A stretch of 61,598 nucleotides of DNA, filler included, from Bipalium vagum (Eukaryota): NCBI GenBank assembly GCA_037834085.1. It is 3 parts of 3 records of this genome, joined end to end, with 100 filler letters (N's around TTAATTAATTAA, not from the genome) between each part and the next. Parts side by side here need not be neighbours in the genome. Positions count along the whole stretch, not along the records: positions 18,229 to 34,555 come from JBBMKC010115934.1; 2 more parts are not named here. One strand, given 5' to 3'. Within the stretch, counting starts at the first letter, position 1, and every line of letters begins with the position of its first letter. The notes under the pieces are model-generated. The model was not told the DNA's origin. It saw only the letters and a program-made list of their open reading frames with translations, and did not search any database. Positions 18,229 through 34,555 of this stretch are shown piece after piece. A program made the translations under genes and the position numbers.

Positions 18229-18290
18229 TTATCATTTGTATATATAAATAAATTTTTTGTATAGCGTTTCTATTTCATTGGCCACAACTG
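18229..18290. mobile_element. Tc1-like terminal inverted repeat at contig edge
   Basis: ...CATTGGCCACAACTG|TA, a CAGT-type terminus with TA target site, next to the gap. Confidence 0.5.
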
Positions 18291-18590
18291 TATATATATA
18301 TATATTATTCCATATGGATATTCCTTAAGAAACTAATACAACAAATGAAAATATAAAATTTGATTGAAGGGAAAATGAAAACAAAATAAACGAATAAAAA
18401 TTGCATCGAAAATAAAAATATGTACAAAAATTAAAATAAAAATAATCGGATTTTAGGCATCGTTTTTCAATCATAAATAAAAGCACTAATCTTGGAAATT
18501 GACAATAAGATACTTAAGTAATACATCAATAATAATAATAATAATAATGTGTAAAACAACTATTTATTGTTATTTCAATATTTTTATTAC

Positions 18591-21500
18591 CTCGTCAAGA
18601 ATTTCGGATATATCCTGTTCCAATACTTGTTTTGTTGCATTCGATTCCTCGGGCAGTATTTTATTTAAAATCACTGATGTCTCACTATTGATTAAAGGTT
18701 GAGTAATTATTTTTTCCACTTCTTTATTCTGGCGACCCCATAAATAATCCCACCAACCACTCGCTTGTGGAGCCTGATTAAACGTTTCATTCTAACAGCT
18801 TAAAATAAAACCAAATTTCGGTTTAAAATCAAACCCGAGTTATTTCTCGACTTTTCCGATTGACTCTTTCCATTGCCACCTCTCGTAGATATACTAAGCT
18901 GTCAAAGTCTAATTCCGAATCTAATTGGTTTTGAAAATCCAATTCGTTAGAGCTGTCTTTGTTCAACAAATATTCTTCATAACATTGCACATATTTAACA
19001 AGATTTCTTGCTCGTTCGACCAATGCTTTACCCTTACAGTCATCTCGAATATGCTCCGATATTGCAAATTTCCACCATTCTTTGGGCCTGGGTATAAATT
19101 TTGTAAAGCAACAGTATAATTAGCAAAATTATTTGAAAAAAATTATTCAAATTAAAACGATAATTGCTAATTAAATCGAAATAAATATTTTAGACCAGTT
19201 TTAATATCCTATCCTTTTAGCATTGTGAATGAAATTTTTTGAATGAAGTATATTCCAATATTTTTCAAGTTTAAAAATCATTAATCCTAAATAACTTGAA
19301 AATTTCAATAATTAATTAGACTTCACCATTTAATTAAAAAACTATTTTATAAAATTAACTTTAATATCAAAAATTAAACCTTTTATTGCCAGTTTCCAGA
19401 CAATCAAATAAATCAATATCTTAACGTCGAGTTGAGTTATGAGAAAAAACCATTTTATCACTTCAAAAATATAACATTATTCCAATAAAAATTATTAGTT
19501 ATTAATAAGTAATTTTTGTTGTAATTTAAAAATGAAAAATAATAAAACGCTATGTTTCATTTTTATCGAGTTCATCATTTTCAATATCGAAGTCTTGTTT
19601 TAATAAACTGAAATGCAAAAATGATTATTTTTAGTTTTATATAATCAAAGTTAATAATTATATTTGATTTAAAACCAAACAATGTAATTGAAAACAAATA
19701 ATTAGGCTGAAAAGAATTTAAAAATATCTATAATAAAAATATTAAAACGAACGCCTCCATTATGGATAATTGTGGTCTATACTTCATGTGATGTTTTAAA
19801 CAATCAAACCGTTCTATTTCATCTGAAAGGCAGGTCGCAACTCTGAATTGAGCCTGGGATAAACTAACTTCAACCAATTTCATTTTTAAATGAAGAGAAA
19901 TTCTTGGCATATCGGTCATCGGGAAGGTGTTTAAATTTCTTTTCATTATGCCATTTAACGATATAGGTTTCACTATAAAATCACACTCTGTTAATTTTCC
20001 TATCTAAACAATATATGTCATATTTCTAAGACACATTAAAATGAAAATTTCTTTTACTTTTTGCTGAAGTAATACTTTAATATTTTCTGAACACACATCT
20101 TCACAACAATTTTGGCTGTGTGGCTCTAAATAAATACTGACTCCACTAAGCTCTACTTGTTTGTTTACCACGTCCATTTCTGTTTTTAACTCACTTTTGG
20201 ATTCCTGGTGAAATGTGAATTCAATTTTGCATATTTACATAAAAAATAACGTAGAAATATAAAAATTTAATTAATAATTTTGAGATAAATTCATTTCAAA
20301 TATTAATTTTTTTTAAAGATTCCCTTTTAAAGTCGATAAAATAAAATTCCCACTGTAGTCATATGAAGAAAGATTTAAGCAATTGTGTATAAATTTATGA
20401 TAATTATTAATAATGTTCAGATGATTAATTTTATTCACATTTCGAGAAATACTTTTACTTTAATCATTTGAAGACTAACAAAAAATTCACAAGAGTTTCA
20501 TTATGATGATTTTCGTATCTTTAGTAAGAAAAATGATTAATTAATTATACTACTACTAATAATTATTATTGTAATTATAATAACAATAATAATATATAAT
20601 TATTGGATCAAAAAGTTGAAAATGAAGATTTTCTAACGAAAGAGACACTTCGTTTTTTGGCATTGATTTAAATGTTTTGATTTAAAATATGAAGTAATTT
20701 TCAAATTTTAAACAACTGTTTTAAGGATTCTTAAAAATTGTAAATTTTGAACGTTCAGATCCACTGAAAATTATTTGAAGGTGCATAATTGAAAATATAA
20801 AACAGGCAGAACAAAAATCGACATTGGTAAATTAATTACACTTAAATCAACAAGTAGTGATCGCTTAAGAACGGCCGGAAAGAAATTTTATCATATGAAT
20901 TGAATAAACGAAGCACATGATAGCGAAGTCTTTGCAACGCATAATTCCTGAGATGGAAGAGCTGATTTATTTACAATCTTTAACGAGAAAAATCGTTGGT
21001 AAATCCAGAGCAACGGCAATCACAATGTTTAGTTGACTTAAAAAGGTTCTTTGTATCATGAGATGCAGAAAATTTTTTCATAACTTTTACAAAATATATA
21101 ATTGATTAAACTAAGTCGTTCTGCTTAAACAAATCCACAGTAAGTAGAGCAAAAAATTAGTCAGTTTACTGAAAGACATGTGGAAAAACAGTAAAACAAA
21201 AATGAAACTCAGCCCAACATGGTTAAATCTTCAGAAAAATATACGATCCGAATCACGCCTTCTCAAATTTGATGCTAATAAAAGGTCTGAAGAAAGGATC
21301 ACGTCGTATTTTTCTGTTATCAGTTCACAGGTTAGAAAGTGATGGCAATTATATTCAGTATAACATTTTTTAAACCCGTTTTTAATATAATTATCTTCAT
21401 TTTTTTCTTTGAAGACAATAAATATTTCAATGGTGAAATATTTATAGAATTTCTCATTTCAAATTTATCGAAATTTATATTTTTTACAGGAAAATACTTT

Positions 21501-23517
21501 ATTACCAAAATTTGATTTTAACTCTTATTTTTAAGAATTTAATATTAAAAAAATAATTTTTGATTAAATTAAAAATTGTCTTACCCATTCAAAATCCGAG
21601 CTTTTCATTGAAAATTCATCAATAATAAGACCAGTGGAAAAAATTTGTGATGGAATAGTTAAATTGTCTTCATATCTAATGTGAACATTTCTGACTTCAA
21701 TTTGTATATTGCGTAATATTCGATATCCAAGTGATGCAACATAGGATAACCACTGTCTTGATTCAGATTTTTCATTATTTAATTGATGGGCAATTTTCTG
21801 TTTCACAATGATAATTATCTTAATTAATTATTTACACCATCGTAAATACTTTACGCCATTTTGCTTCCAAAGAATTCAAGAGCAACTGTTTCATCATATC
21901 TTCGTTTTTGAATATTTTTTCTGAAATCTTCCAATTGCTATTTGGTACGGCTACAATGGAAATGTCCTCAATCATGATTGCCCAGGCTTGAGAGCGAAAT
22001 CGAGTATATGGTATACGCAGTGTAATCCGTCCAATAAGACCTAGAATTGAAATCAAAGTTAATAAAGTTAAAATCGAGATCAAAAAAATTATTAGTATTA
22101 GTTAACTAATAGTTCATGATTGAAATTTTCAAACAATTTCCTTACTTTCTCCTTAAATTGGTTCGCTTTACGTGCAATATACAAGAATGTTACCAGTTAG
22201 TATATATTGTGAGAAATAAAAAATAATTATAAAAAATCATAAGTGATAGGTTCAATAAGCAGCAGAGCTAATGTATAAAATTTATTATTTGTAAAAACCA
22301 TGAAAAAACCTTAAGAAATTTCCGACATTCTGAAAGAAAAATTATCCACATCATTGGAAAAGAAGGAAAAAATTAATATTCTCTAGTACTAACATTAGAC
22401 ATTGTCCACAGCATTATCCAAATCTTGATTAATTGAAATTGTGCTCAAAATTTGTACAAATGTTATTAAAATATGAAAAACAGAAAATGGCCTAAAATAC
22501 TTTAAAAATTATGATTGTAATAATAAAATTATTTCAAATACTATAGGAGATAAAAATCTAGTAATCGTTCAGAATCATACAATCCTCAGATGAGTGAAAC
22601 TTTCAAAAGCCAAAGTCATAAAAAATCTAAAATTGAACAAAACTCATGGGATCATCTAATCAGTGCTGAAATTTTTCAAACTAAGCGGAGATTATTTGAA
22701 ATGAAGATGAAAAACAGATTCTATTTTTTTATTTGCATATCTCAATAATCATAAACCAATGTATGTGTAAAAGTTAAAGACCATGGCAAGACAATTTTTC
22801 AAAATATTCTGTTCAAGACTTTCAGAAACTTTTCAATGATCTTGTGAATTATTTGAAATTTGTGATTAGTGAGAATGGCAATTACAGTGAAAAATTAAAC
22901 TCCCATATTTTGCTTGTTTATTTATATTGTTAAATATAAATTTATTATAGCGAATTTTTCTTTTTCAGGACTGCTACTTTATTAATGAATCGATATTATT
23001 ATGAAATGATAAAAATGAAAGACCTAAGTGAATCCCGTTATCTTATGAGAAAACCATAAATTTATTCCTTGCTTATTTTATAATTATCGTATTGAATCGA
23101 ATTTCAATATGCGATTAAAAACTCAATTCCACTTAAATTAAAACAGAAAACTGTCTAATTTTTTCAGTTTCTTTAAAGGTATTTAAATGAAAAAAAAATC
23201 GTTTCTAGAGATTTTCTAAAATATAAGATAAACTGTGTAATATATAGCCAAATATATTAGAAATATAAATGGAACAAATAAAAGGACAAACAGCCAACCT
23301 GACTTCACAAGTATAGGCCATTCCAATAAATTTTCGAGAACACTTTTTTTCAGAGCAAGATTGTCCAGTCGAATATCACCTGAAAACTCAATAAACCAAC
23401 TTTTATCAAAAAAACAGAACCTTTGAATATTCCTGTTTTCACATTTTGACTGCTAAAATTCTCGACATATTTACCGATGATTTTGTCGAGAAGATAAGTA
23501 ATTATCTGATTGATCAT
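18591..23517 (-). CDS. VPS13D: VPS13D-like bridge lipid-transfer protein, first 8 coding exons (Chorein-N region, 478 codons; 3' part absent from window)
   Basis: Hand-spliced GT-AG exons with consistent phase: 23517-23421, 23379-23299, 22040-21850, 21797-21585, 20204-20058, 20003-19753, 19087-18835, 18791-18591. Protein MINQIITYLLDKIIGKYVENFSSQNVKTGIFKGDIRLDNLALKK...GLIGRITLRIPY...AWAIMIE...LEAKW...ILRNIQIEVRNVHIRYED...KYRP...PKEWWKFA...GWWDYLWG. LEAKW, WLSYVAS and MPRI favour the D paralogue. VPS13 family is certain; the paralogue call is less so. Confidence 0.9.
20720..21350 (+). mobile_element. Highly decayed DNA transposon, possibly hAT, in VPS13D intron 4
   Basis: GC-richer, coding-like segment with weak hAT-like stretches (EAHDSEVFA, CIMRCRKFFHNFYK). 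No intact ORF. Confidence 0.3.
22190..22880 (+). mobile_element. Decayed Tc1/mariner remnant in VPS13D intron 2
   Basis: The 3' end translates to FSKYSVQDFQKLFNDL...KFVISENGNYSEKL, like a Tc1/mariner transposase C-terminus. Confidence 0.5.
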
Positions 23518-23681
23518 TTTTCCCACTTCTAGAAAATTTATTGAATTAATATTTCAACATCAATAATAACATAATATTTTTGTCTATGATTAAACAATTT
23601 TCTATGAATAAAAAAAATTTAATAAAAGAGAAATCTCCAAAATAAGTTTTATTTACACAGACACACGCATTAGTTGAGCAA

Positions 23682-23952
23682 TTATTTCTTGTTAAAATCC
23701 TGAGAATCTAAAAGCTTATTCTGATCTAAATCTTTAAGACTCAAACCAAGTTGATCCAAATCGCTGCGTAGGCATCTAGTTTAAGTAAAAAATATGAAAT
23801 ATATAACTTTATTTTCTTTACTTTAAGTAAGTTTCTAGTTTATCAGTACAAGGGTCGTTCTTGTCACCAGACAAGAATTTCGGAAAGAAATCCGAAAAAC
23901 ACGAATCATAGATTTTTTTATGCTCATTACAAGTTTTACTAAAGCTTGGCAT
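23682..23952 (-). CDS. TRIAP1: TRIAP1/Mdm35 homologue (twin CX9C mitochondrial intermembrane-space protein), 74 aa
   Basis: Exons 23952-23822 and 23775-23682 with a 46-nt GT-AG intron. Protein MPSFSKTCNEHKKIYDSCFSDFFPKFLSGDKNDPCTDKLETYLKCLRSDLDQLGLSLKDLDQNKLLDSQDFNKK*: two CX9C motifs plus the YDxCF...KFLxG...DPC family signature. Absent from the ORF track. Confidence 0.92.
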
Positions 23953-24768
23953 ATGTTTTTGAGCCGCTAAATTTGAAGGCTTTTTGTCTGCCTAAAATTA
24001 GAAGATCATTATTTCTATTATAATTATTATTATCAAAGATTATAGTCTACTAATCAAACAGCACTGTTGTGATAATCAAAATCCAAAAATACAAGACAGG
24101 AACATAGAAAAACATTTATTTCTTTACACAAAAACACAAAATACAGTCTACTTTAATTGACCTTGGCAATGATATCTAAATAAAAGTTTTTCGTTAATAT
24201 AACATTAAAAAGTTATATAAATTGATGAATGAGAATGAAAAGCCTCATTTAGAAGTTAAAAGTTTTCCTTAAGTTACAGTTCACCAATATTTAGTGATAT
24301 TAATAAATCAATAGAATTAAAAGATATTAATCTAACAGATTATTTTTTTTATAAAATTTGGTTCTCTTGAATAATTCAAACGATTATTGCTTTAAAATAA
24401 CAAAAGACCTTCCATTATTCTATCAAAGAATTACTTTGATAAAAATAACGGATTTTATTTATGAGGAGCATGTTATATGATATACTTTAGATATTAATTT
24501 AAAAATGGTTTCTACTTAGTATAGTACTTACAAACTAAAGTAGCTAATTCAACTTTCAATGTGAAAAACAAGTTTTATTTATGCATGACTGAAAATTTAT
24601 AAAAAATGTTTACTATCAGATTTTTAAAGTTTCTATTATTTCTGAGCTTACGTTTTAAACAATTGTAATAAATAAAAATATAACTGTTCAATACTACAAG
24701 AAAAGCAAAGATTTATAATAATGTTGTGAAAATTTAAATACTAATTTCATTAGGTTAAAAAAATCATA

Positions 24769-25569
24769 CTAAATATCATTCATTGTCGGCAATTTTCTGA
24801 AAGATTTTTTAAGTGATTCATTTTTTTTCCTTGATAATCTCTTTTCGTTGTTACTGACCGTGCTGCAAAAATTTTTTCTAGTAAAAGAGTGTTTTATAAA
24901 AGACTTACATTTTGTCCCATTTATCCTTTGATTCTGCAGACACTGTTGGGGTCTTAGATAACTCAATACAAGTCCTAATTGCGTGTCGAATACGATTTAG
25001 ACAATCTGCTTGGTTAAGCATCTGCATTCTTGTTTTATCTGATTCAATTATGAAATAACTATCTTTAGTTATCCGATGAAATTCCTGTTATTGATATAAA
25101 TTCTTTAATTTATAAAAATAAATACAGATTTCATAAAATTATTTTTAATGTCTTCAGGAATCCAATTGACAGACGGCACGTGGAATCTTATTTGCACTTT
25201 CGAGTTATCTGTATTTTTTATAAAAGGCAACAAATATATAAAAATGATACTTTTATTAACATGTTGTCCACCAGGCTTCCCGGATCTCATATACTTAATT
25301 TGTAAGTCATCTATAATAAGTTATAATACTAATAGTTGAGCAATTGCATACTTATGTTTATTTCTCCAAAAGCATCCTTATTTAAAAATTATTATTTAGA
25401 ATTCTATTATATATTTCACCTTTAAATTTTCTATTTGCTGTGTTTTGCTATTTTCATGATATTCCTCAACTGACTTCGAAATATCACTTTTATAAGATAA
25501 CTGTCTATTAATGATTATATTTGAATTCAAAAAGATATTTCTAAATGTTAATAATCCACAGAACTTCAT
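24769..25569 (-). CDS. MRPL58: ICT1/MRPL58 mitochondrial peptidyl-tRNA hydrolase (GGQ), 195 aa
   Basis: Exons 25569-25420, 25376-25352, 25310-25251, 25208-25126, 25084-24909, 24862-24769; all GT-AG and in frame, introns 43, 41, 42, 41, 46 nt. Contains YMRSGKPGGQHVNKNNSKVQIRFHV...WIP...SDKTRMQMLNQADCLNRIR and a basic C-terminal tail NEKRLSRKKNESLKKSFR. Confidence 0.92.
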
Positions 25570-26910
25570 TTTAAAGAATTAAACATAAAAAATATTTTAA
25601 ATTTTAAATTTTACTTAATTTTTAAAACAACTACTAATTATACATTAATTAAGTTTTATAAATGATTTTATGAAATTCATAGAATTTTGGAATAATTTTG
25701 ATTTTTGCCTTTAATAATTATATTAATTTATTCTTACCTTTATAATATTAAATATAAGTGTAATTGTCACCATTATTTTTTCACATTTAATTCCAGATTT
25801 TTTTGAATAAAAAATGTGGCATCAAAGTATTCAAGCCAAACTCTCATTCACCATACTTATCTGGTCTATATAATGCACTCGAGTTAGTGAGAGTTTCTCT
25901 TATAGTTTCATCGCTTCTTAAATTTGTTTTTCTTTAAGATTTGTGTTTATTCATTGGTTAAATTAGATTTTCACATATGAAATGTCAGTATTTAGAAATC
26001 TTATTGATTGAACTTCGATATCATTGCAGCTGTGAATTTTAATTTAAAATTTATGAATTTAATATTTCTTATGTTATACAATCTTTTTAGAATCCAGACT
26101 TATGGAGAAATTTTTTCAATAGCGGAGCAATTAATGGAAGCACAACGACCTCAATAGCAACCTCTTTCGTTAAGTTTTTTAACATACTTCAAAGTTACAA
26201 AAGTAAACCTAAAAATTAATATTACTTCATTTAAAATGTGAATATTTAAACTGATTTCTTATTTTTAAATTTTTATATTGTGCATAATTTAAATTTTTAA
26301 TTAATTGTAAATTTAATCATAATATTTATTTAATTTAATTTAAATATTTATTTTAAAATAATTTTTATTATAATGGCACAATATATTAATTTATTAAGAA
26401 TGGAAAATTTGTTTAGGTATTATTGTTTTAAAAAGCATTTAAATATATATATTTTTCGTACTATGACCGATTTTGTTGATATCACAGCTAACATGAAACA
26501 AAAACAAAAAGCTGTGACTATCAAATGAAATCCCTTTTTAAAAACTAATATAAGTCATGTAATAATTATTATATAAAAATTTATTTATATATCAATTTGA
26601 AATCTAAAATCTGAATAATCGTTAGATAATATTAGTTTTAATATATTTTTTAGTTTATATATATATATGAATTTTATTAGATAATTTTAGATCATATAGA
26701 ATTTAAAATAAAAATACTGAAATGCGAACTATTTTTATGAGTAGAAATTGAAGCATAATGCAACAAAAGTTTTTCGCATTTGGAGTTGAGTAGAGAGAAA
26801 ATGAGCATTAAAGACCACACGCAAAAATAATTTGCTTTTGATTTTCTTCAATTTTATGAATACCAAAGATCGAATAAATCCAAATTTGGTTTTAATTTTT
26901 TACGCCTTAC

Positions 26911-26981
26911 GAATACTGAATATTGAATATTAAATACTCCAATACCACAATATTAAATACCGAATATTGAACATTGAATAG
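26911..26981. repeat. Degenerate ~7-bp tandem repeat (AATAYTG-like)
   Basis: aatactg aatattg aatatta aatactc caatacca caatatta aataccg aatattg aacattg. Confidence 0.7.
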
Positions 26982-27290
26982 AGTTATACTTCATTTCCAT
27001 ACCACTATCAATTTTTTTCAAATTATCATTGATTAATAATTTTTTGAATTTCAAATTTTAATTAAATTTATGATTTATTGATTTTTTAAATTTCAACCAA
27101 ATTTAGTTTTGATTGTTTTCATTTTTCATGATTTTTATAAATTTTCAATTGTATGAATTTCATAATTTATGATTGAAACACAAAACTCATCAATCCATCA
27201 TTTTATTTTTTTAAAGATAGATGAAAATTGTTTTTGTGAAGTTTGTAATAAAATTATTTGAAAATATAATAAGAGTAAGCATTTAGATAC

Positions 27291-28239
27291 TGTTGGGTTA
27301 GCCAAGGACACATCCTTGCTAACCCTTGTAAAAGTAGAAGTATGGTAGAGACCGCAAGGGTCAGAAATAAATTAATAATAATAATAAATTAATAATAATA
27401 ATAAATTAATAATAATAATAGTTAATTAATTAATTAAAAAGTACATCCAAAAAAAATGGGCAATTAATTATTTCCAAAAAAGGATCTAATCTTGACAATG
27501 GCGAACTTAAATTGCCAAGATTAGATCAGGGTCCGCAAGGAGGGACCGATTTAGAATAATCAAGCTAAAAAGGGAATTGAGATTCCCCATTGATAAAGCT
27601 GGTCTACGATTGATTGATTGTCTGATCAGAATAGTATATAAGGAGTTGGATTGAGAAGTGAGATTGAGAACTGCTGCATTTATTTTGAGTATTATTGTTT
27701 TTTGTCAGAAGAACCATTCTTATTGTTTGCGGAAGACTATTATTAATGTCAGAAGAAGAATCGTTATTATTATTTGGAATTTGCCATTGCTTTTGAAATC
27801 GTAATTTATATTGATATATATTATGAGACAGGAGATCACGGCGGGTCCTGTGCGGTTAGGGGGTTTCTGAGCGGACCGGATTGGGCTCAGCTAACCACCC
27901 TTTGGACCTGTGTTCACCAATGGTGAGAATATATCTAAATTTTATTCATTTGTTTTTTTTTATCTTAACATTTTATTATTTGATTATTGATTATTATTAT
28001 TATTATTATTTGATTTTCAGTGTGACAATATTTGATTTTTCTCTTTGTGTAAGAACACTTGTTTTCAGACATTCATTGGTTATTTGACACTTTTCGTTTG
28101 TATTGTTATTTTACAATAAAGGGTTGTTCATAATTGTTTGATTCATTAATTTGCGTACACGTATAGGCTAAGTAAAGGGGTCAGTAATTTTGCGAGCTAA
28201 GTGTTACGACAGGGTTCATAGTGAGTTAATATCGTAACA
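27291..28239 (+). mobile_element. Solo-LTR-like element (~950 bp)
   Basis: TGTT...AACA termini and GC-richer than its flanks. TATA-like TATATAAGG at ~27636, AATAAA at ~28115, 17-bp unit (AATAAATTAATAATAAT) x3 at ~27366-27420. No clean TSD at these ends. Confidence 0.65.
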
Positions 28240-28677
28240 ATTTTGTAAAATTTTTTTAAGAATACCTGAATCCAAGTACTAGACAAAATAGTTTGACTGG
28301 GGCAAAGATTACAATAGACAATGACCCCGAAAATAAAATTCTTGTCTATTGAAGCCCCCGAAGTAATGGACTGGTCTTCTAGTAGTTCTGTTGTTATCTC
28401 ATATAAAATCTATGGTCAATAGTCAAGCGTAGCGTAGACATAAGAAAACAGACAAATCTTGAACAATGGAATAAGATTTATTTGGACATCTTAGATAATT
28501 TAGTAAACACGATGGCGTTTATTGATTCCAAAGGAGAAAGAATTAATTATTAAATATATTAATAATATATTTGTGCCTTTGAGTGTAATATTTATATCTT
28601 GTACATATTTAGTTTTTATTCATAATTCGTCAATAAAAAGTATAAATACTGAGGACAAAGACTTTTGTACTCAACTG
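28240..28677 (+). mobile_element. Tc1 (DD34E) transposon 3' remnant
   Basis: caatagacaatgaccccgaa (QDNDPK-like), VMDWSS...NLWSIVKRSV (WPSQSPDLNPIENLW-like), right end ...ACTTTTGTACTCAACTG|TA at 28677. Confidence 0.75.
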
Positions 28678-28759
28678 TATATATGGAAAATGAAGACAAA
28701 GTGAATACTTAAAAATATTCAGGTTGTTATGTAAATTGTGATATTTTGGATGTTTATTG

Positions 28760-29624
28760 ATCATGATTTTTTTGCCATTAAACTTTTTGATGGTGTCTTG
28801 TAGGAAAGTGCTGTTTCGTCACAATTAAAAATGACAGCAGCTCTGTATCCTTTCATTTTAGTCTTGAAACTTTGATAAAATTCATTGAAATCGTTTCTTT
28901 TTATATTATTTGATTCTATAGATAAAATCTTTAGTGTAATTCTATGGTTTTCTGTAAATGATTGCAACCGACCATTAGACGCACAAAATGTGTTGTTTCC
29001 CACTTCTTTCACCAAATGCAAATCTTGAGCTTTTAAAATTCGCTCATTATAAATTCCGCCACAAGCTTCAATAAACTGAATTTTTCGAACCGACTTTGAT
29101 TAATATTGTCATATTTACTTTTAATGAAATTCCTCAATCTATTAATATTAATTTGGGCCGCTTCCATAATTGTATCCTCTGACTTAAAATAATTTGCTGA
29201 TTTATCTGATATATTCATGTTGAATTGTCTTGAAAAATTTGATGCCACTTTTACAAAAGAAATGCCTTTATTCTATTCCATATAATTGATAATTTCTATT
29301 TTCTGCTGGATACTTACACTGGAATTTTTCTTTTTTGTATTACAATGGTTAGACATTTGCCTGCTGAAAATGTTTATTGTAACATATTTAATTCGCATTT
29401 AATAAAAATTAATGTATATAATTTATAATTTACCAAAATTTGATAACGTTCGCTGTAAAATAAATAACTGTCAAGTAATTTGAATTGAAATTCTCAATGA
29501 AATAATGAAATATTACATTCAAACAAATTTGAAAATCGGAAAAAGTCAGGTTTCTTGACAAAAATGATCATAAATATTTTTTACGGAAAAATAGGCAGGG
29601 TTGAAAAATAGACAGGTTTGATTG
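28760..29624 (-). mobile_element. pogo/Tigger transposon 5' remnant
   Basis: CENP-B-type HTH and DDE start: SIQQKIEII..., FCASNGRLQSF, IFNCDETALSYK (ORFs 28761-29021, 29033-29248). Terminus TA|CAATCAAACCTGTC on the minus strand at 29624. Confidence 0.85.
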
Positions 29625-30591
29625 TATTTAATTTTAATTTGATAATGATAAATTTATTCAAAAATGATATATTTTCATATACACAAACAAAAAAGTGATA
29701 ATTAATAAATTTATATCAAACTATAAAAATATTTTAAAAAGTTATCAGAGTACCTTAAAAATATTTATCTATGATATAAAGTTTATCTCGACTAATAAAT
29801 TACTTTTCAATTTTTTTTAATTTTATTATTATTATTGATATTATTATTATTATTGTTATCATAATTATTATTAATTTAGTTTTTAAAATTTATTTTATTC
29901 AACAAAATTCCGATAATTTTTCTTTCTTTTTGAGTAGATAACTTTTCCACCATTCGAAATTTTAAACCTCTTCATTAATTAATAAAAATAACCTCCAGAA
30001 ATATTATCTTTTCGGATTTTCTGAAATTGATTAAATTATAAATAATCTTCGCTTGACACTTCTTGTTATTCAAGGATTATCAGGAGTTAATAATTCAATC
30101 AATATAAGTTCACTATTTATATTTATTGGTTTATTGATTTATTTATTATAATAGAAAATTTTTAGTTAAAATAAATTGCAAAAATCGATATTTTAAATAT
30201 TTTTAGTTCCATTTTTAATTTTATATTATTGATATTATATTATTTATAAAATTACCAATTGATTTTATGAAAAAGTATTTATATAACACGTTAAAAGTTT
30301 TTTTGTCAAAAATCATTCATATTTACATATAGGTAAATACCGCATTTATTTATTAGCCTAAACTTTAATTTTTATTTATTTCTATTACAAAAATCACAAA
30401 AGCTAAGCAGATCTCAATATCGTATATTGTGATGAAAATTATAAAAAAAAGTTATTATACAATTATATATTTATTTATAAAATAAATACAGTTCTTAGTT
30501 GATTTAATATTTTCATTATTTTAGTTCTTCTTAAAAATGAAAGTTAAAGTTTTATAATAATTATAACTAGGGCAAACTTTTTTTTGACTTT

Positions 30592-30843
30592 TTATTATTT
30601 TTGCCATACTTATGATGATTGGTTTGAGAATGAATATTTGCTTTATCATATTTAATATTATTACTAAAACTTAGAATTATTACAGTTAATTTAATTTAAT
30701 AATTTTTAATTAAAAAATTAATTAATTAAAAATTATTTGCGATAGGTTTATTTAATTTTTATAAAATATCTTTGTGTTCACAGATATTTTATGCAATTCG
30801 ATGAACGATTATTAAGAGTCTGGACCTTTCCAGTTGAGAGACT
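30592..30843 (+). repeat. Diverged direct repeat, copy 1 (copy 2 at ~31450-31699)
   Basis: Aligns by eye over ~250 bp with ~31450-31699, including gccat...gatgattgg, gcgataggtttatttaa, tctttgtgttcacag and agagtctggacctttcca. Confidence 0.9.
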
Positions 30844-30849
30844 GAAAGA

Positions 30850-31301
30850 AAAAAGAAATGATAACAGAAAAGAAATACTGCCTAGAAATTGATATAAGTA
30901 GAAAAGAATGTGCCAGCATTGATCAATCGAAAATGGCCGTCCGCACATAGCAAAGCAAACCACGGATAAGCTGAAAACCCTAAATTATAAAATTCTGCCT
31001 CATTCACCGTACTCGCCCGATCTCTCTCAAACTGATTTCCATGTATTCAAACATTTACAAAATTATTTGAATGGGAAAAGATTTAAGAACGAAGAGTTGC
31101 TGAAAAGGGAATTTCCAAAGTTCATGGTCTCCAAATCAACCGGATTCTATCGTATAGGAATGGAAAATCTACCAATTGCTTGGCAAAAGTCTGTAAACGC
31201 TATTTTTTGTTATTTTAATCAAAAAATATTTTGTTACGGCCGACTTATGCTGTTTTAATATGAATGCACAGAAAACGTTCAAAACTTTCTGAACAAGCCA
31301 A
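30850..31301 (+). mobile_element. Mariner 3' fragment with right TIR
   Basis: ENGRPHIAKQT...ILPHSPYSPDLSQTDFHVFKHLQNYLNGKRF...LPIAWQK; ends AAAACTTTCTGAACAAGCCAA|TA. Confidence 0.9.
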
Positions 31302-31449
31302 TATTTTAATATCGTAATAATATTTTCAAATATTTATTTTATTATTAAATCTCAATTATTAAAACAAGTAAAATAAATAATCTTTTCATCATTACATTAG
31401 TATAATAATATTTATTAGTGTTATTAAATTAAATGAAATCATTAATAAT

Positions 31450-31699
31450 ATTATTTTCGCCATGCTTTTGATGATTGGCTGGAGTGTAAATATCTGCTTT
31501 ATAATATTTAATATTATTACTAAACCTTAGAATTTATATATTTTATTTTATTTAATAATTTCTAAATAAAAATTAATTAATTACAAATATTTTTGCGATA
31601 GGTTTATTTAACTTTTATAAAATATCTTTGTGTTCACAGATTTTTATGAAACTTGATGAACATTTATTGAGAGTCTGGACCTTTCCAATTGAAAGACCT
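31450..31699 (+). repeat. Diverged direct repeat, copy 2
   Basis: Second copy of 30592-30843. Confidence 0.9.
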
Positions 31700-31810
31700 T
31701 ATTGTGAAGTTTAGTATTATTTGTGAAAAGTATTTCTGGTCTATCTTCAGGTTTTAATTCTATTGGAAAAAATAATGGAAAAAGCCAGGTCAATATTCGA
31801 TGAAATCTGA
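31646..31810 (+). CDS. Candidate spliced 40-aa micro-ORF (or lncRNA exons)
   Basis: Exon 31640-31708 follows the acceptor tgttcacAG, then a 42-nt GT-AG intron (31709-31750) and exon 31751-31810. Product MKLDEHLLRVWTFPIERPYCEVLILLEKIMEKARSIFDEI*. CGCCAT (31458) and GATTGGCT (31473) lie upstream. Confidence 0.3.
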
Positions 31811-33139
31811 ATTGTTGTTCAAGTTTTAGATATGATAGAGTTAAATGCTCTTAAAAGGTTCCATTTATCTTGTTTCAACTCAAAATATTTTTGTTCAAAG
31901 AGGGACTCTCCCTTTCTGAGTGATAAATCTAAATGGAGTAATTATAAAATAAAACAAAATAAATATTTTTGGTTCATTATTTGTGAGGATTTGCCTTTCC
32001 GACAACAACCCCCACATTTGGCTTGGAAAGTATTTTTAATAATATTTAGCAATTTTTCTTGATTTTCAACGTAGTTTTATTAAAAATAATTTTTTCATTT
32101 TATATATTTCATTGTTTAAATCTTTGTTTATTGTGAACATAAAGTGGTATATTTTTTTTAATTTGGGGAATTTTAAATTTATTATTTTTTTTATTAAAAG
32201 TTTAAATTTTCTAAACGAACTATTTTGTTTTTTTTATTTTTAATAATTAGATAATGTTCTTAGTTTTCTATAGAAATATAAAATTCAAGTTTGTTTTAAT
32301 TGAATTTTAATTTAATTATAAACAATTTTTATTTACAAATCAATAAAATAAAAAAAATGAAATCAGTTTCCATTAATATTTATTTTTGCTAAAAACGTAA
32401 CACATAAAAAGACTGCACTAAACTTTTAATTAATAAGAGCAGTTATTATTAATAATTAATTAAAAATTAATAAATTGTTTATTTATTTTATTACTAGAAA
32501 AAATAGAAAATTAAGAGTTAAAATTACAGTACATTCTCTGGTTCCGTATTCCTAAAGAAATAATTATGAATTGGAGAACATTTATTTAACTTTGCGTTTA
32601 TCTGAAACTGACTTTCAGAATTAAAATTTACAGACTTACTTGTTTGAAGATGTCAATAGGAGGATTAATTTTTTTCCTTTTTATTAATAATTTAATGATT
32701 TTTTCTGGTCAAATCCAAAAAGGAAAAATGGATAAAGTTTTGGCTTTAAATTTTCAATTTATTTTATATAGTAATTATCTGTGGAAAGAGATATTTTAAT
32801 TGCTAAATTCAGCTCACTTTTCATTTTTTGATTTTTATTCAGAATCATTTACACTGGACATTTTTTATAACATTATCTTCTATTATTTTCTTTATTATTA
32901 TTATTATAAATATTCTTAACTTCATTAGATTTCTTTTAAATTTATTAAAAATACAGATTAAAATAATAATAATAATAATAACATTTTATTTATAAAATAA
33001 ATTTTTCGTACACAAGGCTCATAAATTAAATAAACAAGCACAAGTGCCATAGATATAATCAACCAGCATGGATTTTTGATAAATTTCATTCAGCGTAATA
33101 ATTGATTTGTTTATAAAATTAACAAAATATCCAAAAAAT

Positions 33140-34110
33140 CAAGAGATCCAATAATCAGCGCCTTTTTAAAAATAGCTGTAATAAAGAAATCTTATTCATT
33201 TGTTTAAATAGAATATTTGAATATATATTATTTATGCATTTTTCAAAGAAAACCTATTCTGATATTTTTAACGATATCTTATTTTTATCCTTTTTTAGTT
33301 TGCTGTTTATATACAAAATAAGCAACATTTGAGCGAGAGGTTTTTTCCTTTTGTTATAAAATATCTACAGCAGAAACTCACAGAGTCCTTGTCAGGGCAT
33401 ACGGGGACAATGCACTATCAAAAGCCGGTTGCAAAAGGTGGTTAGCCTTTTCGAAAGGTTGAATTTATGATGGAAGATAAAAAATACCCAGGAAAAAAGA
33501 AATTGTTGGAAAATCCGTGCCAAACTCAAACTGATCTTGCTAAGTCATTAAATGCTTCTAAATCTTCATTTAGTCGAAGTCTAAAACCCATGGAAAAAGT
33601 ATAAATAGTTGAAGATGGGTAGCACATGAGCTCTAGATGAAAGATGTAAAGTCACAAGTGAAATTCTGCTTGTTAGACAAAAAAGAAAAAGTTTCCTGCT
33701 CCGAATTATTAAGAGTGACGAAAAGTGAATTTCTTTCAAAAATCTTAAACGCAGAAAAACAATTTGCGATCCCAAACAGCCCTTCAAAGCAACCCAAAAA
33801 GAAGCATCCATTGGAAAAGGCTCTCCAAAGCATTTGGTGGCACCAAAAGGGTTGCTAATGAGTTTCTAATGCAAAGTAAAACGGTTACAGGGAAAATGTA
33901 CCGATAACAATTAATAATAATACTTCTGATCCAGACCATGGGCGAACAAAGACCAGGAGTAATTTTGGTGCATGAAAGCACCTGGTCATACGTCAACAAA
34001 CGAGTCCTGGAAACGTTAGAGTTGCTTCAATAGGAAGTGCTGCTCCATATGGCCAATTCACCAGATTGAACCTCTTTGACTCTAATCAGTTTTGGTCGAT
34101 GGCACAATCA
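33140..34110 (+). mobile_element. Decayed mariner (mauritiana/Mos1-like)
   Basis: KISTAETHRVLVRAYGDNALSKAGCKRW (cf. Mos1 KTAAESHRMLVEAFG), WVAHEL, IWWHQKG, LVHESTWSY. Same family as 56600-57620. Confidence 0.85.
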
Positions 34111-34555
34111 AATTTAGTCAGAAATAGCAATAAAAATTAAATCATTGAAAAGTTATTATTTAATATTTATTATCCAGAGACTTAATTTATTTACTCTTAT
34201 TTGTCAAATATTCTTTTTCCAAATATTTTCCTTTCTTTCATTTCATTTAATGAATCTTGTTTTTTTAATGATTAATAATATTAATAATAATTTTAGAATT
34301 ATATATTATAAATTGGAAATATAAATTTGAACTTTCTAATTATTTTTTTTACACATTAAAATTTTTATTTTAAAAATAAACATTTAAATATTTTTTTTTT
34401 CATTTAAAATTGTATTATGTAATATTGAGATAAAATAGTTAAAATAATAAATAAATAATATATTTCAAATAATGTTTAAGAATTAATATAATTTTTTAAA
34501 ATAATTAAATCAAGTGATTATACATTGCCGGAAATAAGTTATATGTCCACATAAC

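Follow-up and report, generated by a model that had tools for sequence, protein, structure and literature searches.

A closely spaced TRIAP1–VPS13D gene pair in Bipalium vagum as a candidate spliced-leader operon

Known gene layouts and the TRIAP1–VPS13D locus

Operons of nematodes and flatworms that are resolved by spliced-leader (SL) trans-splicing consist of tandem genes on one strand, separated by gaps of 100-300 nt, in which a 3′ splice acceptor near the ATG of the downstream gene lies ~100 nt past the AAUAAA of the upstream gene (PMC12582326, PMC8629364). A layout of this kind was found in Bipalium vagum, where a gene for TRIAP1 (Mdm35) lies 164 nt upstream of a gene for VPS13D on the same strand. 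The window, that is, the whole stretch of DNA that was analysed, is 61,598 nt long (filler included), and joins three parts of three records of assembly GCA_037834085.1; positions count along this stretch, and the piece that holds both genes (18229-34555, JBBMKC010115934.1) is eukaryotic DNA with ~25% guanine plus cytosine (GC). In parasitic flatworms, operons were called at intercistronic distances of ≤300 bp, with a median of 99 bp in S. mansoni (PMC12582326), and the mode lies near 100 bp in both Macrostomum and C. elegans (PMC8629364); the 164-nt same-strand pair falls within these published criteria for operon candidates. A trematode operon, consisting of the gene for cytochrome b-c1 complex subunit 7 followed by that for enolase, resembles the present locus further, in that its upstream gene codes for a small mitochondrial protein (PMC12582326). 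In contrast to the described SL operons, the TRIAP1–VPS13D pair is known from genomic sequence alone.

Two other types of locus invite comparison. In the cholinergic locus, which is conserved across animals, VAChT is nested in the first intron of ChAT, and the two genes share a non-coding first exon. As in the locus described here, two genes of the same pathway lie on the same strand, with the small gene preceding the first coding exon of the large gene, and the coding region of the large gene starts right after an acceptor in the 5′ untranslated region (5′-UTR). However, the TRIAP1–VPS13D arrangement is not conserved across animals, and no shared first exon was identified. The dicistronic mRNAs of Drosophila, and the bicistronic transcripts of yeast and green algae, likewise carry two same-strand open reading frames (ORFs) with a short gap between them, but these mostly pair short ORFs, whereas here the second ORF would comprise several thousand codons, divided by dozens of introns, behind an ORF of 74 codons. 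The encoded proteins belong to the families of the TRIAP1-PRELID/Mdm35-Ups lipid shuttle and the bridge-like lipid transporter VPS13D; in contrast, no linkage of the two genes was found in the other genomes examined. A literature search found no paper that joins TRIAP1/Mdm35 and VPS13D in an operon, a bicistronic transcript, or a genomic linkage.

The analysis below favours, tentatively, two intact, separately translated genes in tandem that form an SL-type operon. A previous, sequence-only reading of this DNA had placed the end of the TRIAP1 stop codon at 23682 and the VPS13D ATG at 23517, with a 164-nt spacer, a set of motifs, and a 128-nt interval (23656-23529) between them, and all of these coordinates proved exact on the minus strand. 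Its two gene identifications were also confirmed, as follows.

Gene identities, the spacer and the splice acceptor

The upstream gene was identified as TRIAP1 (Mdm35) from its first exon, which by itself matches Pfam UPF0203 (PF05254) with an E-value of 1.1e-9 (38.8 bits, compared to a cut-off of 27). Comparison with solved structures gave human TRIAP1 as the best match (6i3v, E 1.2e-6), followed by yeast Mdm35 (4xiz, E 0.009). The spliced product of 74 aa, in a family whose members measure about 70-90 aa, contains a perfect twin CX9C motif (Cys8-x9-Cys18 and Cys35-x9-Cys45). Without splicing, the frame stops at 23820-23818, and exon 2 supplies the fourth cysteine, Cys45, nine residues past Cys35, once the intron is removed; the gene model is supported by the appearance of this cysteine only on intron removal. 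A word search with exon 1 returned no candidate.

The downstream gene was identified as VPS13D. Its Pfam VPS13_N match begins at position 1 of the domain, and the tblastn alignment of VPS13D-type proteins against the piece begins at reference residue 1. The exons were searched singly, and each falls below the Pfam whole-protein cut-off by itself. Exon 3 ends at 21850 or 21838, either donor being in frame. The gene continues past the piece edge at 18229, with approximately the first 415 residues inside the piece. A search of exon 4 (71 residues) against 1.84 billion representative proteins gave 410 matches, none above ~55% identity. The best named matches were VPS13D-like proteins of Tubulanus, Ptychodera, and Littorina, with an Anopheles UBA-domain protein and Nymphon VPS13D further down the list; eight of the 11 best library matches were D-type, and no flatworm VPS13D was identified among the matches whose names could be looked up. 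In exon-wise tblastn comparisons, the summed bits were higher for VPS13D-type proteins (Patella 264, Ptychodera 221, Tubulanus 215, Littorina 196, Nymphon 188) than for a VPS13A-like protein of Branchiostoma (124) or for fungal Vps13 (98-122). By these comparisons, the gene groups with VPS13D, and less closely with VPS13A/C or fungal Vps13; this D-type assignment is based on the N-terminal ~415 residues, as the UBA domain, VAB repeats, and C-terminal domains lie beyond the piece.

The closest VPS13D relative, with 43% identity over 210 residues, lies on two Logan contigs from different samples (L001, 557-1675, and L002, 317-1325); limpet, hemichordate, and nemertean sequences come next. The top of the match list consists of slow-evolving spiralians plus a hemichordate, and shows no particular flatworm affinity. 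Intron 1 of the L001/L002 gene lies at the same codon as in the window gene, introns 2-4 of the window gene are absent, and the genome is intron-poorer, with 43-47% GC. Macrostomum lignano (P0073/L003) and Echinostoma caproni (P0041/L004) were considered as flatworm tests of the adjacency, and were dropped because both have VPS13A/C-type N-termini; the Echinostoma contig offers just 126 nt of upstream sequence. One of these two proteins is named “UBA domain-containing” in UniRef, despite its VPS13A-like N-terminus.

Motif frequencies in the spacer were compared with chance levels computed from the minus strand of the piece, per 164 nt. AATAAA was seen twice (0.83 expected), GTAAR once (0.42 expected), and TTTYYAG once (0.14 expected); windows of six or more T are expected 0.52 times, and TATAWA, expected 0.77 times, was not found in the 164 nt. 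The TTTTCTAG acceptor before the VPS13D ATG is modestly unusual against this background, with TTTYYAG present within 45 nt upstream of 3% of the minus-strand ATGs, and the looser Y4N?YAG upstream of 8%. The AATAAA that follows the TRIAP1 stop lies ~120 nt upstream of the TTTTCTAG acceptor, and cleavage 15-25 nt past this signal would leave ~95-105 nt before the acceptor. Upstream of TRIAP1, the TTTTAG constitutes weak evidence, as YYYYAG precedes 16% of the minus-strand ATGs by no more than 45 nt.

An acceptor just before the start codon was found to be a recurrent feature of VPS13D genes. TTTTCAG is located 11 nt before the VPS13D ATG in the closest relative (L001/L002), at the same distance as in the window; the limpet Patella has TTTTTCAG 24 nt before the ATG, and the nemertean Tubulanus has CTTTTAG 1 nt before it, while no such acceptor was found just before the VPS13D ATG in Helobdella or in the animal contig L088. 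The feature is present in three of these five loci, compared with a background of 9% (P = 0.007). This recurrence in orthologues indicates that the acceptor at 23529 is likely real and used, and the AG at 23530-23529 is probably, as judged from the comparison, the ancestral acceptor of a VPS13D 5′-UTR intron.

Table 1. Features of the TRIAP1–VPS13D locus and its upstream neighbour, in positions of the window
Feature	Positions	Strand	Remarks
ICT1/mL62 gene, five exons	24769-25568	-	ATG 25568, stop 24771-24769; GGQ motif; sequence reading
Candidate 3′ splice acceptor TTTTAG	23992-23997	-	39 nt before TRIAP1 ATG; AG at 23993-23992
TRIAP1 exon 1	23822-23952	-	ATG 23952; 43 codons + 2 nt; Cys8-x9-Cys18 and Cys35; donor GTAAAG next
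TRIAP1 intron, 46 nt	23776-23821	-	GTAAAG...CTAG, 15% GC
TRIAP1 exon 2	23682-23775	-	1 nt + 30 codons + TAA at 23684-23682
Spacer, TRIAP1 stop to VPS13D ATG, 164 nt	23518-23681	-	21% GC
GTAAAT, candidate cis donor	23651-23656	-	Overlaps AATAAA; putative, from the motif alone
AATAAA	23648-23653	-	28 nt past TRIAP1 stop; likely TRIAP1 poly(A) signal, putative in use
T8 run	23610-23617	-	Between poly(A) signal and acceptor
Eight-codon upstream ORF	23546-23572	-	ATG 23572, in-frame ATG 23560, TAA 23548-23546; out of frame with VPS13D
Second AATAAA	23537-23542	-	Motif in spacer
3′ splice acceptor TTTTCTAG	23529-23536	-	AG at 23530-23529, 11 nt before VPS13D ATG
VPS13D exon 1	23421-23517	-	ATG 23517-23515; chorein N-terminus, residues 1-32 + 1 nt; Pfam VPS13_N positions 1-31, E 1.7e-4
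VPS13D intron 1, 41 nt	23380-23420	-	GTTCTG...TTTTCAG
VPS13D exon 2	23299-23379	-	tblastn
VPS13D intron 2, 1258 nt	22041-23298	-	Donor GTTGGC
VPS13D exon 3	21838-22040	-	Pfam VPS13_N positions 59-122, E 7e-9; tblastn
VPS13D exon 4, 71 aa	21585-21797	-	Pfam VPS13_N positions 125-199, E 1.5e-18
Further VPS13D exons	18847-20180	-	~Residues 198-415 of reference proteins (tblastn); weak Pfam VPS13_N and VPS13_M matches

Transcription of the pair: a possible SL operon and its rivals

In an SL-type operon, RNA polymerase II would start upstream of TRIAP1, possibly back at the ICT1/mL62 gene that precedes it, and would read through into VPS13D. The TRIAP1 mRNA would be freed by cleavage and polyadenylation after the AAUAAA at 23653-23648, and the VPS13D mRNA would receive its capped 5′ end from a spliced leader, trans-spliced ~100 nt further on onto the AG at 23530-23529. 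Trans-splicing at 23529 would also remove both upstream AUGs (23572 and 23560). Low GC content, short introns, and long branches fit the lineages that use SL trans-splicing (flatworms, rotifers, and nematodes), and the 25% GC, the 40-52-nt introns, and the long-branch bilaterian VPS13D protein observed here were counted in favour of the operon. The sequence-only reading had proposed such an operon, and the part of the proposal that concerns layout stands, as the same-strand 164-nt arrangement agrees with published criteria; co-transcription is what we infer from the spacing, which is the one property that makes the pair an operon candidate, and it is likewise presumed that the poly(A) signal is used, that trans-splicing takes place, and that the organism has SL RNAs.

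Several observations weigh against an SL operon. The AATAAA, GTAAAT, and T-runs of the spacer are at chance level in DNA of 25% GC; with the poly(A) signal and the donor at chance, what stands as a genuine observation is the pair of genes and the distance between them, and tandem pairs of this kind are expected by chance when many windows are scanned. The acceptor 11 nt before the VPS13D ATG, to which the sequence-only reading had drawn attention, is present and probably real, but it is not specific evidence for SL trans-splicing, because the limpet and nemertean orthologues have one as well, and we know of no report of SL trans-splicing in limpets or nemerteans. In those animals, the acceptor presumably serves an ordinary 5′-UTR intron, and the acceptor at 23529 could just as well receive a non-coding upstream exon by cis-splicing. 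A search of public sequencing runs gave, as its sole match, near-identical unspliced genomic contigs that are unbroken over the introns and spacers and from which the assembly was probably built, and an Rfam scan of the 16-kb piece matched no SL RNA family.

The adjacency itself is missing at all seven other animal VPS13D loci examined, which also counts against the operon. No TRIAP1-like gene or ORF was found upstream of VPS13D in Patella, Tubulanus, or Helobdella (10 kb checked), in L088 (2.9 kb checked), or in L001/L002 (556 and 316 nt checked), and the gene tables of Littorina and Ptychodera do not place TRIAP1 upstream of VPS13D. A metagenome scan found a TRIAP1-like ORF at none of 80 VPS13 loci, all of them distant (tblastn, E ≤1). 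The TRIAP1–VPS13D arrangement is lineage-specific, and its absence from seven other VPS13D loci weakens the claim, made in the sequence-only reading, that co-regulation of two consecutive steps of lipid delivery has been selected, leaving that claim without comparative support. In Ptychodera flava, the upstream neighbour of VPS13D is arranged head-to-head with it at a distance of 560 nt, and encodes Fer2_3 and Fer4 domains (succinate dehydrogenase iron-sulfur subunit); this neighbour is likewise mitochondrial, but is a different gene.

The competing explanations differ chiefly in the source of the VPS13D 5′ exon, which would be either a spliced leader joined in trans or a non-coding exon, located in the spacer or the TRIAP1 3′ end, or upstream of TRIAP1. 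Somewhat less probable than the SL operon, though a serious contender, is a pair of independent units whose closeness is incidental, VPS13D being driven by a core promoter of its own within the spacer or the 3′ end of TRIAP1. The VPS13D transcript would then have an unspliced 5′ end, a very small non-coding exon joined to the acceptor at 23529, or, if the organism uses spliced leaders, a short outron that a leader replaces. Core promoters fit within ~100 nt, and tandem animal genes that lie <200 nt apart and have separate promoters are common; the lack of conservation of the adjacency also suits this explanation. Introns 1 and 2 of VPS13D have donors with T at +3 (GTTCTG and GTTGGC), and with a donor consensus as loose as that of the Bipalium vagum genome seems to be, donors in the spacer cannot be predicted reliably. 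Given that the VPS13D introns use such weak GTT donors, the GTT sites that resemble them 29-65 nt before the acceptor could end a mini-exon within the spacer. On the other hand, beyond the TRIAP1 3′ UTR and poly(A) site only ~100 nt would be left for a promoter and leader, any unspliced leader that begins before 23572 would be hampered by the two upstream ATGs, and the spacer contains no TATA-like motif, a weak argument at the expected frequency given above. The genome is also roomy elsewhere: the piece includes a 1258-nt intron, a neighbouring spacer of 816 nt, and several kb of transposon debris, and since it is not compact, the 164-nt gap is not simply the local norm.

A locus of the nested or shared-exon type, in which TRIAP1 would lie on the same strand inside an ancestral 5′-UTR intron of VPS13D, appears unlikely. 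The non-coding first exon and promoter of VPS13D would be located upstream of TRIAP1, which may share that exon through the acceptor at 23993-23992, and use of the TRIAP1 poly(A) site would be in competition with splicing onto the AG at 23529. This arrangement would explain the recurrent 5′-UTR acceptor just before the VPS13D ATG and the candidate acceptor of TRIAP1 itself, 39 nt before its ATG, and good donors exist in the 816-nt upstream region (for example, GTAAGT near 24531). However, the TTTTAG before TRIAP1 is near chance, no upstream exon is identifiable from sequence alone, and a functional poly(A) signal would have to lie within the intron; same-strand nested genes with such a signal are uncommon, because the host transcript is truncated. 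The least probable of the alternatives, regarded as very improbable, is the second variant offered by the sequence-only reading, in which splicing takes out a 128-nt intron that runs from GTAAAT (23656) to the AG at 23529, yielding a bicistronic TRIAP1–VPS13D mRNA from which both proteins are translated. Donor and acceptor motifs do exist, and 128 nt is a plausible intron size, but the GTAAR donor is at chance level, and the very long VPS13D ORF would follow the 74-codon ORF by only 36 nt, a poor arrangement for translation, as ribosomes reinitiate poorly when a long ORF is followed by a short gap. Exon junctions downstream of a stop codon mark an mRNA for nonsense-mediated decay, to which the many junctions downstream of the TRIAP1 stop would expose this transcript. 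Moreover, cis-splicing at polycistron-resolving acceptors is very rare in flatworms (PMC12582326). The bicistronic variant was disfavoured on these grounds, and the resulting order places the SL operon ahead of the separate promoter or mini-exon, which in turn precedes the nested locus and, last, the cis-spliced bicistronic mRNA. A fusion of TRIAP1 exon 1 to VPS13D, from the donor at 23821 to the acceptor at 23529, was considered separately and rejected, as the reading frame is lost and a stop follows after 19 codons.

The gene row and its meaning

On the minus strand of the piece, three genes stand in a row, ICT1/mL62, TRIAP1, and VPS13D. The ICT1/mL62 stop precedes the TRIAP1 ATG by 816 nt on the same strand. 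Its ORF, which contains the GGQ motif, has a weak Pfam RF-1 match, and in a comparison of its exon 4 with solved structures the top ten matches were all ICT1/mL62 (E 0.007-0.3), which we take to be a mitochondrial peptidyl-tRNA hydrolase and mitoribosomal protein. Three mitochondria-related genes are therefore consecutive on this strand, and might form a unit headed by ICT1/mL62. In the 45 nt before the ICT1 ATG there is no acceptor, whereas the TRIAP1 and VPS13D ATGs each have one, a difference that was counted in favour of the operon. It is improbable that all three form one selected mitochondrial-biogenesis unit of a poorly sampled animal lineage, in which the balance between TRIAP1 polyadenylation and splicing to the ancestral VPS13D 5′-UTR acceptor would set the ratio of the lipid shuttle of the intermembrane space to the lipid bridge between ER and mitochondria. 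No PRELI-like gene was found in the piece, and Rfam and tRNA scans of it returned nothing relevant.

Sequence in the upper half of the piece resembles decayed transposons and shows no clear host gene. A direct repeat of ~250 nt (30593-30842 and 31449-31697, plus strand) has copies 84-86% identical and 856 nt apart, and a mariner-like ORF (31067-31258) is located next to it; another weak match to mariner Transposase_1 occurs at 33637-33855. The ORFs at 27881-28087 (plus strand) and 33784-33999 (minus strand) have in common the peptide motif LCSPMV, followed by R or W and then I, which hints that they are two copies of one decayed repeat; a repeat search at 40 nt did not pair them.

Animal operons have been described as enriched for mitochondrial genes, and several animal phyla are well known to have operons with such a layout. 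For TRIAP1 and VPS13D, the operon reading is reasonable but unproven, and the layout itself is not new. If the two genes are co-transcribed, they would constitute an operon in an animal lineage without a close relative in public protein collections, one that pairs proteins acting on successive legs of phospholipid delivery to mitochondria, beside a mitoribosomal gene. Such an operon would be one more, functionally coherent, example of the enrichment for mitochondrial genes that is known from operons of animals, and would indicate that an ancestral 5′-UTR intron acceptor can become an operon-resolving site.

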